A DNA stretch of 64,000 bases. It comes from Eukaryota sp. TZLM1-RC. Its lineage: Eukaryota > Protista > Metamonada: BaSk clade. A program made the position numbers and the translations under genes. Below are positions 5,242 through 64,000 of the stretch, piece by piece (the stretch's first letter is position 1; each line of letters opens with the position of its first letter). A model generated the notes under the pieces. The model saw only the letters and a list, made by a program, of their open reading frames with translations, was not told the origin of the DNA and searched no databases. The DNA lies in assembly GCA_040285825.1 (NCBI GenBank), contig JAUPSS010000002.1, positions 3,100,001 through 3,164,000 of the forward strand, written 5' to 3'.

Positions 5242-8200
5242 TTAGCTTCGCTTCCTATTTCTGTTACTACGTCTAGGCCTCGTGGAAGGCGTAGACTCAT
5301 TGGTGGTACCTTTACGTTGGCTAGTTTTACGTTTACCAATTTTCTTGTTATTCTTATTGAACAACTTGTAAGCTTCTGAATGTTTAACTGAATGGAGAGG
5401 CTCTTCTGTTGTCTCACCGCCAAACCATTGTACAGTACAGAAACTACGTGAATCAGAACTATATTCTGAGAGGATTTTCTCCATAACGTGTTTTTCAACA
5501 TCGCCTGCTGCGACTGCTTTGAGGTACTCCATATCCTGTGTGTTTTCAGCATTATAGATTTTACAATCTTTCTTGGCAGCTTTTAATTCTGTGCCAGTAG
5601 TAAGATTCTTCAATAATAATGTGGATTTGGCGGGAAGGTCAATAACTAAGAATGGTCCATTCCAAGATCCAAGTCACCAATATTAAATACTATAAAACAC
5701 GAATAAGTATTATTTACTGAAGACGGAGTATTAAATGTTTGGTGACGCTCTGCTTCTTGCCTTTTTTGTAGACGAGTATTTTTCAATTTAATGTCATCTG
5801 ATAAAGGAATATTAGTTTCGAATTTGGATAAATTTCCTAATATGTTAGCAGGGTCTGTTCTTGGACTAATCGAAGAACCGAACATAAGTTCGTAGGGGGT
5901 AAAGCCAGTTTTTCTGCTTTTAGTAGAATTTATCAATAGTTGGGATATAGGTACATAAGTAGATTAATTTCCGTAATCATTAAAATCTATTAATAGTTTC
6001 CTTAAGCATTGGAGAACGTCTCTATGTTTACGTTCTGCATGTCCATTACTTTCTGAATAGTGGGGAATTGAGTTACTCATCTCAATCGCTAATCTATTAC
6101 ACACTTTTTTGACAGTCTCATTGGCGAACTCAGGTCCATTATCGCTATGAATTAACATAGGCATGCCAAAAAATGCGCAAACGTTCCAAATCAACGCATC
6201 TGCGGTTTTTAAGACATTGAGTTCTTTTAAAGGGAATAAAATTGTATATCCAGTAAAAGAGTCTACAAATACTAATAAATATTTATTTCCTTCGTTGTCG
6301 GTGTTCAGAGGTCCATTTGTATCGACGTTTAATCTGGCAGATGGACGATCTGCCCATAGAGATCCTGTGGAAGGTGTTTTTGACCTTTTAACTGGAGCCG
6401 TTTTTTGACAAGTTGGGCAACTTTTGACATAATTTATGAGGTCCTTTCTCATATTAGGCCAGTAGAAGTCACTTTTGGATAGTTTGTGTAAACTATCGTT
6501 TTTGTTGGGGTGGCCAGATTGAACTAAACCATGTATTAATAATAGTGCCTGTTTTCTGAGGTTCTTTGGAATTAAAATTATATTTTTATTATTTTTCCAA
6601 ATTTGAGTATTTTCATCTAGAATTGCATTTTCAATTCTAAAGAGTCATTGTTGTTTTGGGCTATTTGTTGTTCAGATCTTATTTTAGAGAACCAAGAAGA
6701 AAAATGGGTAAGTCTTGGTGTCTACTTAAAGATAAAATTGATGGGATATCTTCAAAGTCCGAATCAGAATCATCGCCTAGTGGAGGTACCTTCGTAATTC
6801 GAAAGTACAGTATCTGGTATATTCATACTACAAATAGAAGGAGTTTCCTCGTTTTGATCCAAATCAATATTCCTCGATAGCATATCTGCCCAATGGTTAT
6901 CTTCACCAGGTTCATGGACTATATCAAAGTCGAATTCAGATAGTATCGGCAGCCATCTCTTCACAATTCTATTTTTCTCTGGGGCTGCGGCCAGGAATGC
7001 AATGTTTTTGTGATCACTGAAAATTGTCAAATGTCTAGTTAATAGGTAGCTTTCTAAACAACTTTCAGTTAAAATCAAGAGTATTGCATATAATTCTTTC
7101 TGTAAAGCGGACCATTTTCTTTTGTTTCTGTGAGTAATCAACTATAGAATGACAAAGGTTTCACTTTCCTTTTATTTAGCGGGGTTCCTGCAGGGGAGTA
7201 GGGTTCAATTTCTTGCCAAATTACGCCTCCTACTGCTACATCTGAAGCGTCAGTACTTATTAATACTCGCTTGCCCGCAGCTGGTAATTCAAGGGGCATG
7301 TGGTTTACAATTAAATCTTTGATTTGCTTTAGATAATCGTCATGCTCATTGGTTTATTTAATAATTCTAGGTTTTCCTTTTATTAAATCGTTAATTGGAG
7401 CTATTAATTCAGAAATTCCAGGAAGCCAATCTCTTATGTAATTGATTGATCCAAACAAGGAGTGAACCTCTTTCACTGTTTTTGGTCTGGGTATTTTCAT
7501 AAGGGCTTCAATATTTTTCATGCTGATAAACCTAGCTTTGTTCTGGAAGGTGCTTCCTAATATGTCAATGGGGTGTTTGGCTGTGACGAATTTGCATTTT
7601 CGTAAACCAATGTTTACCCGTCTTTTTCTGGCGCATTCGAGGACTCTTTGTAGTCTTCTGTAGAATTCATCAAATGAAGTACCGACTAATATGATGTCGT
7701 TTATGTTTATGAAAACGCCGTCTATTTGGAAAATTTCCATCATTACATTTTGGAATACTGCTGAGATATTCTTTAAACCGAAGCAAGCTCTTTTGAACAT
7801 GATGGACCTCCCAGGTATTGAAATTGATGTTTTTTCAATATCTTTTTCTGCTACGTTCATTTGCCAGAAAACTTTTGGTAAATCAAGTGTGGCAATGTAG
7901 TCTACTTAAAAATTTCAATATGTCACTAATCCGCGATAAATTAGGTTCGACAGAAATTGTATGGGCTTTAACACCATCTTTACGACTGAAGTCACCAGTG
8001 AATCTAGGTTTTCTATCATCTGGATAGATAACTAGGATAATTGCAGAGCTTAATTTATCAAGAGCTTTGATGAGCTCATTCCTTTCGTTAAGGGGAATTT
8101 CTAATACCTTTTGGGTATCCCCAACCATACCGAGAGTCTGAAAACTAACGTTTCTGCCACTTTTATGAGTATAGCTCCACAGAGGAGGAAGCTGGTCGAA

Positions 8201-57869: not shown

Positions 57870-58990
57870 TCACCTCTTTTTAATCCAAACCTGGAAACTG
57901 TGGGTATTACGATCAACCTTAAACTTAATTGTTGGCTCCCCTTCACAAAACTCCCAAACAAGGTTAAATAGTTTTAAGCTACCTTTTCCAGTTATTATCC
58001 TGATAAAATCAACTTCATTCTGGTGACACCACTGCAGTGACCTAGTAAGACATTTCGCAGCCCCTTCTGCATCAAAGTAATGCAGATCTAGAAGAAAACC
58101 CTCATTTTTGCGTTGAGGTAACACTGAATCTTGAATTTTGTTTATCGAGTTGGTTAGAACTTTCACATGGTAAGTTGAATCGATTGTCTTTATAGAGAGA
58201 AGTCTTGACCTGCTATTCTGAAGAGATGCCAAATGAGAAAGGTCTTGGTGTTGGAATGGTATAGGGTTAGGGTTAGGCTTTCGATGGATATGGGCGGTTG
58301 CTCTCTGTGATTGCTTTCTTGATTGAGTCTGTGATTGCTTTCTTGATTGAGCATTTGATTGATTGCTCGCTTTGGAACTAACTACAGATTTTGACGATTC
58401 ATGGGTTGGAATCGAACCCTCGACCATGGAGGTAGAACTCGATCGACTTTCCCAAATAGACGATTCTTCAGAACTATCCAAAACAGAATAAGAATTATTT
58501 AAAGAATAGAATTCTTGAATAATATAGATTAATGTATCTACTGGTAAATCATGGTATTGAATGATCCATTGTGTTGCAATTTCTTCTGACATGCCGGAAA
58601 ACCTTTGCAATAGAGAATCCATCATTTGAGCTTGTTTGATGCTGAAAACCGGTGGATGATTAGTCACAGTAGGAGTTGGGATAGATGTGTAGGCAGAGAG
58701 ACAAACATGGCACTCAGCAAAGACGAGATCAGCAGAGAGAAACGGAGAGGATAAGGTAATGGATTCAATAGTGGCAAAGATAGTAGATCTAGGGAGATGG
58801 GGAAACTCAGCTACTAGAATCTCAGAAAGCGTGTCAATGTCAATCGAAGTAATGATTGGTTTAACAAAAAGATGTTATGAGAACAATAAAGATGGGCCAG
58901 CGTTACCACTCTCACGGACCTAAGAGAAGAGAGAGGTCCGAAGAGGTGAAAACGTTGAATTCTCTTTTGGTTTTCGTGGTATGCAAACAT
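57870..58990 (-). CDS. Smr-domain protein with CUE-like N-terminal segments; 5' end needs a GT-AT intron at 58872-58906
   Basis: LDLH...A...L...IRIITGKG (Smr). The frame is open up to 58874. ATG 58990 joins it in frame through a 35-nt intron. The 5' model is tentative. Confidence 0.65.
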
Positions 58991-59066: not shown

Positions 59067-61277
59067 ATGGTCACTATTATTGATACTTTTACATTTGCAG
59101 TTGGAACCATATTTGTTGGTTTACTTATCATTATTGCCATTAGTAGCCTCAAACATCCACAGTAAGTTTACTTATCCTTCGTACCTTACATAATCACAGC
59201 AATGAGGGGACTATATGGGGCGATTGCAGCAGCAATTCTTGCGGTTGTCTGGTTTTCGATTCTATTCCTCACAGGTGTTGCATGGGTATTTGCCTTCATT
59301 CCCTTTATTATAGGGGCTGTTTTGGGCCTCCTTTTAGCACGCCTTGTTGCAATGACATCTTTACCGTAATGTCTTCCATCTGTTTGCTTACTGTAGCCAA
59401 ATGGTTGCTCTGCTGAACGGATTAGGTGGTTTAGCGGCAGTACTGCTTGCATTTGCTACATTTTACGAACCAGGGCTTGCAACTACGTTACCTCTTTTAC
59501 TGGCAATATTCTTACCCCTCTGGATTGGTACTGTTACCTTTTTTGGTAGTATGATCGCTGTTGCCAAACTCATCGGGAGGCCCAAAGTTCTTGGTATGTA
59601 CACCTTTAGATTGATCACAGCCAACGATTATCCTGGTCCTCTAAGAATGTTTGCCTTCCTTTTATCATTTGTCGCACTTGTCCCATTGTTGGTCTTGTTC
59701 TTGATTTTAGCCACTATGGCATCTTTTCTCGGGCTATGGATTCTATTGGCTATAGCGGTTGTCAGCGCGATAATGGGCGTGTATGTACTATGACTTCACT
59801 TACCGAAGCCTATTTGTCATTGGGATTGGGGGTTTGTTACAGATTGGATTTACTGATTTTAGGTGGTATGTTTCTTCTTCTATCCTGCTAACACTAGCTG
59901 ACATGCCTGTCGCAATTTCAATACTCAACTCATTGTCTGGAGCAGCTGGAACCACAGCAGGTTTCATGGTTCGAAATGATCTGGTTGTCATTATCGGAGC
60001 CATTGTTTTCGCTTCAGGTGCAATCCTCGCGTGGCTGATGGCACGTGCAATGAATAGAAATCTAGGAAGGGTTTTACTTGGACAATGGACAGGTACAGCG
60101 GCTACTTCCACTAAAGCAGAGAAAACACGAACACAAGAATGGAAAGCTGAAGACGTTGCCCGTGCTCTTTCTCAGGCCAAGCGTGTGATGATTGTACCAG
60201 GTACTGCTTCTCTCTTTCTCATCTTATTTCAGGTTATGGTCTTGCTGTCTCCAGGGGTATTGTTCTTGTTGAATATTGCTCATTTCAGCGTATTGTAACC
60301 TTCTCAACTCACCTCAGCCAATTTGCTTGTCAGGAACTTGTTGAGTTTTTGCAATCCAAGGGTGTCAAAACTGTTTGTTATAAATCCATTTCTCTCACCA
60401 CATACCTATGTCTCTCATCCTGTTGCTGGACGAATGCCAGGACATATGTCTGTTCTGCTTGGTGAAGCTCGGTTTGGTCCTATTTCCCTTCTACTCATTT
60501 CAGTGTTCCATGGAAGCAGATTCAAGATGTTGATGATGCCAACAGAGAAATTGAAGGTGTAGACGTTTGTGTTGTGGTTGGAGCGAATGACACTGTTAAC
60601 CCTGCTGCCATTGATGATCCACAGTCTCCTATTGCTGGTATTGAAATCCTTCCACACTAACTACAGGTATGCCAATCATAGAAGCTCACCGTGCCAAAAG
60701 AGTGGTAATGATCAAGCGTAGTCTTGGATTTGGTTACGCCAAGATTGATAACCCCCTGTGGTATAGAAGTAATTGCTACATGATGTTTAGTGATGCAAAA
60801 CAGGCCTTAGAAGGTATTCGCGACGCTTTACCTTCAGATTTTAAAGCGGGCGGTGCCAAGCATGTAGTTTCTGAAGAAGTTGTGGATAAGGAAATAGTAG
60901 AGGAGGAAGAGGTGTTGACTTGGGCTGGCCTCGACATTGATCGCCGAACCAAAATCTTCGTTCCAAAAGAGGTATTCAAAGATGAAACACGGGTTGCATT
61001 AGTTCCTGAACATGTCAAAAAATTGTCAAAAATGGGATTCATGGTTTATGTTGAGAAGGGCGCAGGAGAGAGGGCAAAATTTGATGATTTAGCTTATTTA
61101 AATTCAGGGGCCGTCATTGTGGATAATTTTGACGAGGGGGTAAAATTACTAAAAAACGAACAGGATTTTGTAACTGTGTATGAACCGGTGCAGGAAGATG
61201 AGACGAGTAGTGGTCATACAGAAAGTGGTGAAGTTTATGATGATGAAGATCAAGAAGTTGACATGTTGGCGCCCTAA
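59067..61277 (+). CDS. NAD(P) transhydrogenase, beta-linker-alpha fusion, 12 introns, interrupted in the alpha part by an LTR element
   Basis: Spliced model gives HPHTAMRG, MTSLPQMVALLNGLGG, IGGADMPV, MNR, PGYGLAVSRAQ, HPVAGRMPGHM, GANDTVNPAA, GMP, KRSLG.GYA, then alpha N-terminus VPKE...ETRVAL.P...VEKGAG. Introns: 59162-59194, 59366-59396, 59594-59620, 59781-59808, 59832-59862, 59866-59897, 60201-60232, 60257-60288, 60290-60317, 60373-60403, 60472-60503, 60638-60666. Confidence 0.9.
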
Positions 61278-61419
61278 GGCTTATATAATATGAATAGAAA
61301 ATAAATCAGACTTTTCTTTACTACAATAGACTTTAGGCAACAATAATTATTGGCCATTTTAAAGTCAAAAGGTATACCATAACTTCAGCATTAGTGAACA
61401 TCTTCAGACACTTTACAGC

Positions 61420-64000
61420 ATGTCAGACATCTCCCAACCAGATATCTCTGACTCTAATCCACCACTTAATATGCAGCAGGTACCAGCGTCACATACACAT
61501 GATATAGAGGGCAACGAGGCAACGGACCCGGATCCCACCTCCCCCTCCCTTAATGTAGAAGAAGATGAAAGAGTGGACGAGGTCCCTCCATCTTCAACAA
61601 CAGAAGAGGTAACGAGAACGGACCCGGCTCCCTCTCCCCTCAGGAAAAAAGAAACAGAAGAGGTAACGAGAACGGACCCGGCTCCCTCTCCCCTCAAAGC
61701 AATGGAAGAGGCAACGAGAACGGACCCGGCTCCCTCTCCCCTCAGGAAAAAGAAACAGATGAGGCAACGAGAACGGACCCGGTTCCCTCTCCCCTCAGGA
61801 AAAAAAGAAACAGATGAGGTTACGAGAACGGACCCGGCTCCCTCTCCCCTCAAAAGCAATGGAAGAGGCAACGAGAACGGACCTGGCTCCTCTCCCCTCC
61901 CAATTCTAGAACCTGTCTCAAAGGGAACGGATGGAGATCCCACCTTAGACACGTCTTCCCCATTAGGAGAATATGAAGAAATTCAATCTCAACTAGATGA
62001 AATGGAGGGAGAAGACGACTCTTCTGAGGGGTTCTACAAGTTATTAAGAGAGGACGCGGAGGCTTACCTCGAACCAACAGATTTCTGTCTGTTCGAGCAA
62101 CTTCCCCTTTATGGAGTTACGTTCAAAAAAAGAGGCAGAAACGTTGGTTTTCAGACCCTCGGAATGATTGGGGATACCCAAAAGGTATTGGAAATTCCCC
62201 TCAATGAAAGGAATGAACTCATAAAGGCACTCGATAAATTGAGTAGAGAGACATTCGGGCGTAACGCAGAACGCCGCCCCAGAATCTCTGGAATGGACAA
62301 GAGAATCAATGAATTGATGTCTCTTCCCATCAAAGATAGATTGGATTGGAAGGCCTCCTTCCTAGATCAATACGGCAGGAGAATAAGGTTTCTCTCCATC
62401 GAACAGAGAAGTAGGACCGACTCGGAAGACATCCTACAATCCAAATTGCCTGCCTGGTTTGATCCTAACTTTGATACGGAAATCCATAATTACACGGAGC
62501 TGACAGAGGGTGCACCCACATATTTTAGGGAATTTATGGAGCAGGAGGATAGTAGTGAACTAGACAAGCTTGAACCAGTAACCCCCTGGTTTGATGCAGA
62601 CGCTCTAAATAACATTCATACGGAACGATCAGCTGTATCCACGTATAGGAGCCGTCCTAACAACTACACCCAACAACATGGTAACTCGTTCACAAAACAA
62701 CGAGAGTTTAGACAATGGGTAACGGGAGATCCATCCACATCTCTCCACCTTCCCAAACTGCCTGTTGTAGCCCCTATAATTTCTGAAAAAAGCCAACCAA
62801 TACAGGTCTGCTCTATCGACAGCATACCCGATCATGTTCCAACAGTGAACGTCCCGGAACCTGTAACAAGACAAGACGTTGCACCTCAGGAAGAACCAAC
62901 TTCCTCTCAACCCATGGAAAGTGAAATTGGAGAAGACATTGAGTTGAACGGGCCAGTCGTTGGAGAAACGGCTCCTTTTCAACCCTCAGTAAGAGACTCT
63001 TCTTCCGATAGACCTATGCGTATTGAGGACCTACAATCCTCAAGAAGAGCTATTGACATGAGCATAGCTAGTAGCCTTCATAGACAGATTGATCCACGGT
63101 CTAAGGATATCGACTATAAAAGACCTCGATTATCCGCTGATGACCCTATTAACAAAATGTCTATCATAGCTTTTCTTTTAAAATTTCAAACTTGGGATAA
63201 ATACGGGCGAAAGATAGTTAATAGAAGCTTCGAAGCCCCAGGTCAATCAGATTGGACCAGAGCCTTTATGATAGCTACCCAGCTATTTGGAGAAGGCCAA
63301 GCAGAAATAACCCAAGATAGGATTAAAGATCTCCCCAAACATATACGCGACGAGATCACCAGGGATACAACACAGCCTTTGGTAAGGATTGATCCAGCTA
63401 TAACAGATAAGCTCGGACCCCCAATCCACCATTATGATTTATTTAGGAGCATGATGATGAGCACTTGCCCCACAGGAATATCCAGCATGATCGACCCTAG
63501 CCTTCTATCTAGATGGCAGAGTCAAGGTTTACTCGGTGTTGATTATACCGACGCCGACGTCATGGTATTTCTGTTAAAAAGAACGCAATTCACATCATAT
63601 CATGAGGCTTGTACAGCTCTAATGAAGCCTAGAATAAATTGGAGGAAAATCCACAATAGGCATGAGGCTGACAACGAGTTTGGTCGTTATGTAGAAGATT
63701 TTGGAGACGTCTTGAGAATGACCACCTACATGACCGACCTAACCATCCCTGATTTAATTAGAGGAAGCAGTGGGTTGATAACCATATCTCCCGCTCTAAT
63801 AGCCGAGTACTTCCTTATGGGTCTGGATAACTTTGCTATATCAAGCGAACTCCTCCCAGTATGGACTAGGGAAACCTTGTGGGACTCACCGAACAGAACA
63901 ACTCTACTCGATTTGATATCGACAACGAGAAGACATTTCCTCGCTTGGTGTTACACAGCAGGAAACAAGCCCACAATGGATGTACTAAGGAACAGGGCTA
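61420..64000 (+). CDS. Retroelement ORF1 (gag position), at least 860 codons, open to the window edge
   Basis: Manual frame-1 translation from ATG 61420 (MSDISQPD...) has no stop through 64000. It is absent from the ORF track, presumably because it has no stop in the window. Confidence 0.88.
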   Translation, partial: MSDISQPDISDSNPPLNMQQVPASHTHDIEGNEATDPDPTSPSLNVEEDERVDEVPPSSTTEEVTRTDPAPSPLRKKETEEVTRTDPAPSPLKAMEEATRTDPAPSPLRKKKQMRQRERTRFPLPSGKKETDEVTRTDPAPSPLKSNGRGNENGPGSSPLPILEPVSKGTDGDPTLDTSSPLGEYEEIQSQLDEMEGEDDSSEGFYKLLREDAEAYLEPTDFCLFEQLPLYGVTFKKRGRNVGFQTLGMIGDTQKVLEIPLNERNELIKALDKLSRETFGRNAERRPRISGMDKRINELMSLPIKDRLDWKASFLDQYGRRIRFLSIEQRSRTDSEDILQSKLPAWFDPNFDTEIHNYTELTEGAPTYFREFMEQEDSSELDKLEPVTPWFDADALNNIHTERSAVSTYRSRPNNYTQQHGNSFTKQREFRQWVTGDPSTSLHLPKLPVVAPIISEKSQPIQVCSIDSIPDHVPTVNVPEPVTRQDVAPQEEPTSSQPMESEIGEDIELNGPVVGETAPFQPSVRDSSSDRPMRIEDLQSSRRAIDMSIASSLHRQIDPRSKDIDYKRPRLSADDPINKMSIIAFLLKFQTWDKYGRKIVNRSFEAPGQSDWTRAFMIATQLFGEGQAEITQDRIKDLPKHIRDEITRDTTQPLVRIDPAITDKLGPPIHHYDLFRSMMMSTCPTGISSMIDPSLLSRWQSQGLLGVDYTDADVMVFLLKRTQFTSYHEACTALMKPRINWRKIHNRHEADNEFGRYVEDFGDVLRMTTYMTDLTIPDLIRGSSGLITISPALIAEYFLMGLDNFAISSELLPVWTRETLWDSPNRTTLLDLISTTRRHFLAWCYTAGNKPTMDVLRNRA
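61603..61899 (+). repeat. Six 45-55-bp tandem repeats (EEVTRTDPAPSPL) in ORF1
   Basis: Core GAGG(T/C)AACGAGAACGGACCCGGCTCCCTCTCCCCTC repeated with alternating short linkers. Confidence 0.9.

Follow-up and report, generated by a model that had tools for sequence, protein, structure and literature searches.

The AG that closes an intron, which the spliceosome reads in its catalytic centre, is among the most constant signals of eukaryotic genes. In the 64-kb stretch of DNA analysed here (the window), from the soda-lake flagellate Skoliomonas litria TZLM1-RC, a first-pass annotation had pointed to two short stretches within one gene that have normal 5' ends and a branch motif at a fixed place and that end in AT. 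This raises the question of whether the two stretches are introns removed at AT and, if they are, what would define their 3' ends.

The gene and its relatives

The two stretches lie in the following gene.

59067–61277, + strand: putative transhydrogenase gene of 13 exons, corresponding to the deposited 614 aa protein P9112_003602 (P0151)

The best database match (tblastn) was 'hypothetical protein P9112_003602 [Eukaryota sp. TZLM1-RC]', to which the long exons were identical in translation, with gaps at the introns only. The spliced model was queried exon by exon, and candidate boundaries were tested on short joined stretches (junction products of about 35 nt). When each exon was scanned alone against Pfam, the exons were collinear on PNTB (PF02233) and then on AlaDh_PNT_N, the last exon covering the end of PNTB and then the first 77 positions of AlaDh_PNT_N. 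The order of domains is a PntB membrane domain, the NADP(H) domain dIII, a linker, about 80 residues of PntA dI and an acidic tail. Scans of the 64-kb window for Rfam families and tRNA genes gave no matches.

Orthologous loci were examined in two further genomes, those of Skoliomonas sp. TZLM3-RCL (RCL; L001:6001–8057, gene RCL1_004142, protein P0001) and Skoliomonas sp. GEM-RC1 (L002:5175–6930, neighbour GEMRC1_001605, protein P0002). All three proteins consist of PntB and the first approximately 80 residues of PntA dI followed by a short tail and a stop (60950–61277 in the window and the C-termini of P0001 and P0002). The tails after the dI stub were about 47, 41 and 28 residues long in the three proteins and are acidic in the S. 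litria and RCL proteins. As the RCL and GEM-RC1 proteins end likewise with tails of comparable length, the dI-truncated architecture is ancestral. The skoliomonad gene lacks the remainder of the alpha subunit, with its membrane helices and NAD(H) site, and the transhydrogenase function is therefore only putative. The closest longer relatives, of about 1040 aa, were uncharacterised metagenomic proteins. The GEM-RC1 gene has one extra G in a run of G (L002:5925–5950), as a result of which it is annotated as two genes, of 268 and 309 aa, and this is either a homopolymer error in the assembly or a real frameshift.

Intron structure

The S. litria gene contains 12 predicted introns of 27–33 nt within 2.2 kb, of which ten end in AG and two in AT.

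59162–59194, + strand: GT-AT intron, 33 nt, phase 2, containing an in-frame TAA; GTAAGT...CCTTAC-ATAAT, with CTTAC at 59185–59189 and presumed branch A at 59188
59366–59396, + strand: GT-AG intron, 31 nt
59594–59620, + strand: GT-AG intron, 27 nt
59781–59808, + strand: GT-AG intron, 28 nt
59832–59862 and 59866–59897, + strand: two GT-AG introns flanking a 3-nt exon, GTG (59863–59865), inside GGADMP
60201–60232, + strand: GT-AG intron, 32 nt
60257–60288 and 60290–60317, + strand: two GT-AG introns flanking a single-base exon, C (60289)
60373–60403, + strand: GT-AT intron, 31 nt, phase 0; GTTTGT...CTCAC-CACAT, with CTCAC at 60394–60398 and presumed branch A at 60397
60472–60503, + strand: GT-AG intron, 32 nt
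60638–60666, + strand: GT-AG intron, 29 nt

The earlier description of the two AT-ending stretches was borne out at the coordinates it had given. All 12 introns share a 5' GTWNKK and a YTNAY motif at positions −10 to −6 (5 nt before the end), placing the presumed branch A at −7, and are poor in G beyond the 5' hexamer. The 5' ends of the two AT-ending introns, GTAAGT and GTTTGT, match the pattern of their ten GT-AG neighbours, while the terminal AG found in metamonad introns with a fused branch-point/3' splice-site motif is replaced by AT in both. When the S. litria and RCL genes were pooled, all 19 introns were 27–33 nt long with GTWNKK and with YTNAY at −10 to −6, and three of them end in AT.

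A strong 5' hexamer with YTNAY at the exact distance would be expected about once per 10^3–10^4 positions, as estimated from base composition, and homology fixes both places within a few bases; the two sites are thus not attributable to chance. In a census of the window with the strict pattern, there were 13 matches ending in AG (3.6 expected) and 14 ending in AT (6.3 expected), but the window has few intron-bearing genes and these counts carry little weight. Apart from the two introns considered here and one match overlapping a GT-AG intron, the AT matches lay outside the gene and mostly in AT-rich sequence.

The very short exons can be written in more than one way. Across 59832–59897 the deposited protein reads GIGGADMP, and the identical mRNA could also be written with one TT..TA gap. 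At the 1-nt exon, the two-intron model gives SR-A-QF, as in RCL, whereas the deposited SR-G-QF corresponds to a 60-nt gap and differs by 1 nt (GGGCCCAA versus GGGGCCAA in the mRNA); GEM-RC1 has G.

Placement of the AT boundaries

The genes of RCL and GEM-RC1 are continuous at both of the S. litria GT-AT sites. In tblastn alignments the first AT-ending intron appeared as an insertion of 11 codons (Q*VYLSFVPYI) relative to GEM-RC1 and RCL. A reading through its TAA with a ciliate code was ruled out, as the orthologues do not have those 11 codons. In the alignment of single exons to the GEM-RC1 protein, exon 1 corresponded to residues 1–31, the split codon to residue 32 and exon 2 to residues 33–88. 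At the second junction, the exon at 60319–60372 corresponded to residues 69–86 of the intron-free reference and that at 60404–60469 to residues 87–108, and PNTB positions 337–357 of the Pfam profile begin at the second residue of the exon downstream of 60373–60403. Because the residue numbers are contiguous, both AT junctions are free of gaps, and removal of the two stretches is gap-free against RCL as well as against GEM-RC1. Among all 33-nt deletions within 6 nt to either side, only GT..AT yields HPHTA, which is the sequence of the RCL orthologue (CAT CCA CAC ACC GCT) and of the deposited protein. The exact GT-AT junctions, 59161/59195 and 60372/60404, predict mRNA reading ...CATCCACA joined to CACAGCAATG... 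(the downstream exon starting CACAGCA) and ...GTCAAAACT joined to ACCTATGTC... (starting ACCTATG).

The first-pass annotation held that the nearest AG would not serve at either site, and this proved correct: use of the AG at 59199 gives a 38-nt intron and a frameshift, and use of that at 60440 deletes HPVAGRMP. Its further claim, that only the AT boundaries restore the conserved PntB sequence, needs qualification. The alignment is gap-free only with the AT boundaries, but an enumeration of GT/GC-AG and AT-AC pairs found canonical alternatives that keep the frame at the cost of indels against every orthologue and the deposited protein. For the first intron this is a GT-AG intron at 59162–59206, with the loss of TAMR, and for the second a 22-nt AT-AC intron at 60380–60401, with the addition of three residues.

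The deposited S. litria protein

The assembly was made from Nanopore reads and polished with 206x Illumina data (PMC11316075), and the gene models were trained on RNA-seq mapped with HISAT2, with manual curation for S. litria alone (PMC11316075). The genome paper contains no discussion of introns, the word being used once, in the methods (PMC11316075). At the first junction the deposited protein reads ...SSLKHPHTAMRG..., which contains HPHTA. Given the genome sequence there is no other route to this reading, so the submitters must have annotated 59162–59194 (GT-AT) as an intron. To our knowledge, GT-AT introns are not produced by AUGUSTUS, and the model must therefore stem from manual curation.

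At the second junction the deposited protein reads GVKNTYVSHP. Here too 31 nt were removed, but they were placed 2 nt to the left of the GT-AT position, at 60371–60401, with CT..AC ends (...GTCAAAA joined to ATACC...). The two products are one base apart, AAT versus ACT (N versus T). CT..AC is GT-AG read on the opposite strand, and its placement looks like the artefact of a spliced aligner favouring a canonical motif at the price of one mismatch. A GT-AT junction would presumably be reported as CT..AC by such an aligner, while a gene predictor would not be expected to invent CT..AC. The same explanation would also fit the curated G where the model with a 1-nt exon gives A. The deposited boundaries could, however, have been set by homology rather than RNA, which counts against splicing at AT. 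When transcript-derived protein fragments were sought around the second junction (residues 280–440 of the deposited protein), only pieces of bacterial PntB were recovered, and contig L003 was of an unrelated bacterial type.

Probable intron gain and a GT-AT intron in RCL

The orthologous genes have 12 introns in S. litria, seven in RCL and none in GEM-RC1. None of the 12 S. litria positions is common to the seven of RCL and the GEM-RC1 gene has no introns, so the introns are young, and this distribution suggests that the gene gained introns recently, in bursts specific to each lineage. The genes next to it in the RCL and GEM-RC1 loci have no intron or one.

One of the RCL introns also appears to be GT-AT (L001 7171–7200, GTATGT...TTAAC-CACAT), at a position other than those in S. 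litria. In the uncurated RCL model the GT at 7171 is paired with the AG of the next intron, at 7274, so that the model skips VLLGEAKVPWDSIEE (7201–7245), an exon that S. litria, GEM-RC1 and bacteria all conserve.

Gene integrity and genomic DNA support

The coding sequence is 1845 nt after splicing (614 codons and a stop) and is open through all 13 exons; the absence of any other stop or frameshift that the first-pass annotation had reported was confirmed. Compared with the GEM-RC1 gene, pN was 0.28 and pS 0.82 (saturated), values that show long-term constraint only and from which the S. litria gene is judged to be under purifying selection. The 615 open codons, stop included, show none of the marks of a pseudogene (premature stops, frameshifts, relaxed constraint).

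A repeated element begins at the 3' end of the gene.

61264–64000, + strand: repeated retroelement (LTR, then a long intron-free ORF), where read depth rises from 0–2 to 20–120, with loose ends at 61264

The last residues of the gene, LAP, and its stop come from the LTR of this retroelement, and the deposited protein includes LAP. Judging from the tails of the orthologues, the insertion would have clipped at most a few residues.

Contigs from three low-depth runs of one sample were unspliced over a GT-AG and over a GT-AT intron. The runs are taken to be DNA, since record 7 of X1 spans the GT-AG intron unspliced. Record 6 of X1 reproduces 59109–59259 with 0 differences, which answers, for the first intron, an earlier call to verify the T in genomic data: position 59194 is T. 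An assembly error behind the AT ends is unlikely.

Alternative explanations

The two AT ends might reflect something other than splicing at AT. One way would be for the true bases to be G, with the T's introduced by Nanopore assembly or polishing. The assembly is indeed based on Nanopore reads, and the DNA contigs cover 59194 but not 60403. However, the contig over 59194 agrees without difference, the assembly had been polished to considerable Illumina depth, and an AT end is also present in the independent RCL assembly, and we regard this explanation as very improbable. Alternatively, the gene may be decaying, with introns that once ended in AG, both 3' sites killed by G to T changes, a transcript that is mis-spliced or retains the introns, and the retroelement as a mark of the loss. 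The repeated retroelement does replace the last codons from 61264, and retention of the first intron would bring an in-frame TAA into the message. Against this, the 1845 nt in 13 exons hold no further stop or frameshift, and the dI stub and tail are of similar length in RCL and GEM-RC1, so that few residues at most were removed by the insertion. Two hits among 12 terminal G's, both to T and with no other lesion, would also be improbable, the RCL GT-AT intron sits in an otherwise intact gene, and the curated S. litria model reads through both sites. The earlier argument that two random G to T mutations are unlikely is strengthened by the third GT-AT intron, in RCL, and by use of the first GT-AT junction in the deposited protein. 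Decay of the gene is accordingly given a low probability.

The introns could also be spliced at other boundaries, to give a slightly different protein. The in-frame alternatives do exist (GT-AG at 59162–59206, AT-AC of 22 nt at 60380–60401 or the deposited CT-AC), and the deposited protein has N instead of T at the second junction. Yet the first two would cost four residues or add three in conserved segments, in comparison with three orthologues and the deposited protein, and the alternatives break the 5' consensus, the range of lengths and the −7 branch spacing kept by all the other introns. With CT..AC there would be no 5' GT, and the branch motif would fall 3 nt from the intron end. Splicing at other boundaries is thus unlikely. 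Taken together, the comparisons favour both stretches being probably short spliceosomal introns of the metamonad type that belong with the GT-AG introns around them and are removed at AT.

Comparison with known introns

Fornicata and the BaSk flagellates are sister groups (PMC11316075). The introns of Giardia, Spironucleus and Trichomonas have an invariant spacing between branch point and 3' splice site, and the two form a fused motif (PMC6679479). The short introns of these metamonads (Giardia VCTRACACRCAG, Spironucleus RCTAACAARHTAG and Trichomonas) resemble those of Skoliomonas in being about 30 nt long, with a GTATGT/GTAAGT 5' consensus, a fixed distance from branch A to 3' end and no polypyrimidine tract (PMC6679479, PMC10711314). 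Their motif ends in AG, however, whereas in Skoliomonas it is followed by a 5-nt spacer of free sequence, and three of 19 introns in one gene family end in AT. A survey of the Giardia transcriptome listed a single GT-AT junction, that of a candidate 30-nt type A intron, which was rarely used, with splicing in 1.3% of reads (PMC10711314). The Skoliomonas gene differs further in being intron-dense, its 12 introns lying within 2.2 kb.

Such strict spacing has been noted as resembling U12-type introns, and the Giardia snRNAs have been described as U2/U12 hybrids (PMC6679479). GT-AT is a rare, conserved and splicing-competent subtype of U12-type introns (PMC1557818), which, like the Skoliomonas introns, have the 3' site at a short, strict distance from the branch point and tolerate non-AG ends such as AT-AN and GT-AT (PMC1557818). 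The 5' site of U12-type introns is RTATCCTT, unlike the GTAAGT and GTTTGT found here (GTAAGTTT, GTTTGTTA). The U12 branch site, TCCTTAAC, lies 10–15 nt from the 3' end, while the sequences here are ACCTTAC and CTCTCAC with the A at −7, so that the resemblance is partial. As all introns of the gene obey one consensus, nothing points to a minor class apart from the rest.

A U2-type GT-AT intron, in DGCR2, is conserved between human and mouse (PMC1557818). It shares with the Skoliomonas introns a U2-like 5' site and the AT end, and the DGCR2 case is conserved between species (PMC1557818). Vertebrate GT-AT introns are nevertheless isolated cases among hundreds of thousands, and are long introns with polypyrimidine tracts, whereas in Skoliomonas the AT ends recur within one gene. 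New here are the check at nucleotide level by an intron-free orthologue, the support from a curated protein and the independent GT-AT intron in a second species.

A possible mechanism

We consider it likely that the GT-AT splicing is real and that this lineage defines the 3' splice site by its distance from the branch point, with the RNA junctions read from homology and the curated model. Such a ruler agrees with all 19 introns described here and with the invariant spacing published for Giardia, Spironucleus and Trichomonas. After the branching step, the phosphate that lies a set number of nucleotides beyond the branch A would serve the spliceosome as its 3' splice site. An A would be required at −2, while U would be tolerated in place of G at −1. 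The first and last G of an intron are normally joined by a non-Watson-Crick contact, and U at −1 may be tolerated because it could still pair with the 5' G at +1 in that contact. We infer both the ruler and the contact between G+1 and U−1.

If the introns were gained recently, the AT ends may be 3' sites that have yet to be optimised. They may also be used inefficiently, to judge from the low use of the Giardia GT-AT junction. More tentatively, and short of calling it probable, the skoliomonad spliceosome could rely solely on a 7-nt ruler, counted from the branch adenosine, to set the 3' site, accepting AU as well as AG, with non-AG ends in at least a tenth of recently gained mini-introns.

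Were the 7-nt ruler confirmed, it would represent a U2-like system with U12-like selection of the 3' site and would offer a natural experiment on the way in which the ends of new introns arise. Routine AT ends in a U2-like class, if real, would mean that an intron can do without its last G as long as the branch point fixes the geometry, and the fused-motif introns of Giardia and Trichomonas would then be linked to U12-like site selection. Gene predictors that insist on AG would mis-annotate such genomes, as in the RCL model, where a conserved exon beside a GT-AT intron is lost.

Other features of the window

A further candidate was found in the neighbouring CUE/Smr gene.

58872–58906, − strand: candidate third GT-AT intron of the window, 35 nt, GTAACG...CTCAT-AACAT

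Its removal would join, in frame, an exon bearing an ATG to the conserved N-terminus of CUE/Smr. The large exon of this gene lacks an ATG and is preceded, three codons upstream, by a TAA. Its first 80 residues show conservation with the orthologue in GEM-RC1, which aligns from residue 10 of the exon. The curated protein (P0270, 57873–58990, − strand, 251 aa) starts at an internal MMDS and drops about 80 conserved residues.

At 1000–1500 on the + strand there is an ORF resembling a PolB-type exonuclease (CFDLET...HNLMQFD) with a single in-frame TAA. It adjoins a motif ending in TTAACCACAT, a 10-mer identical to the end of the RCL GT-AT intron, and is probably part of a decayed mobile element.
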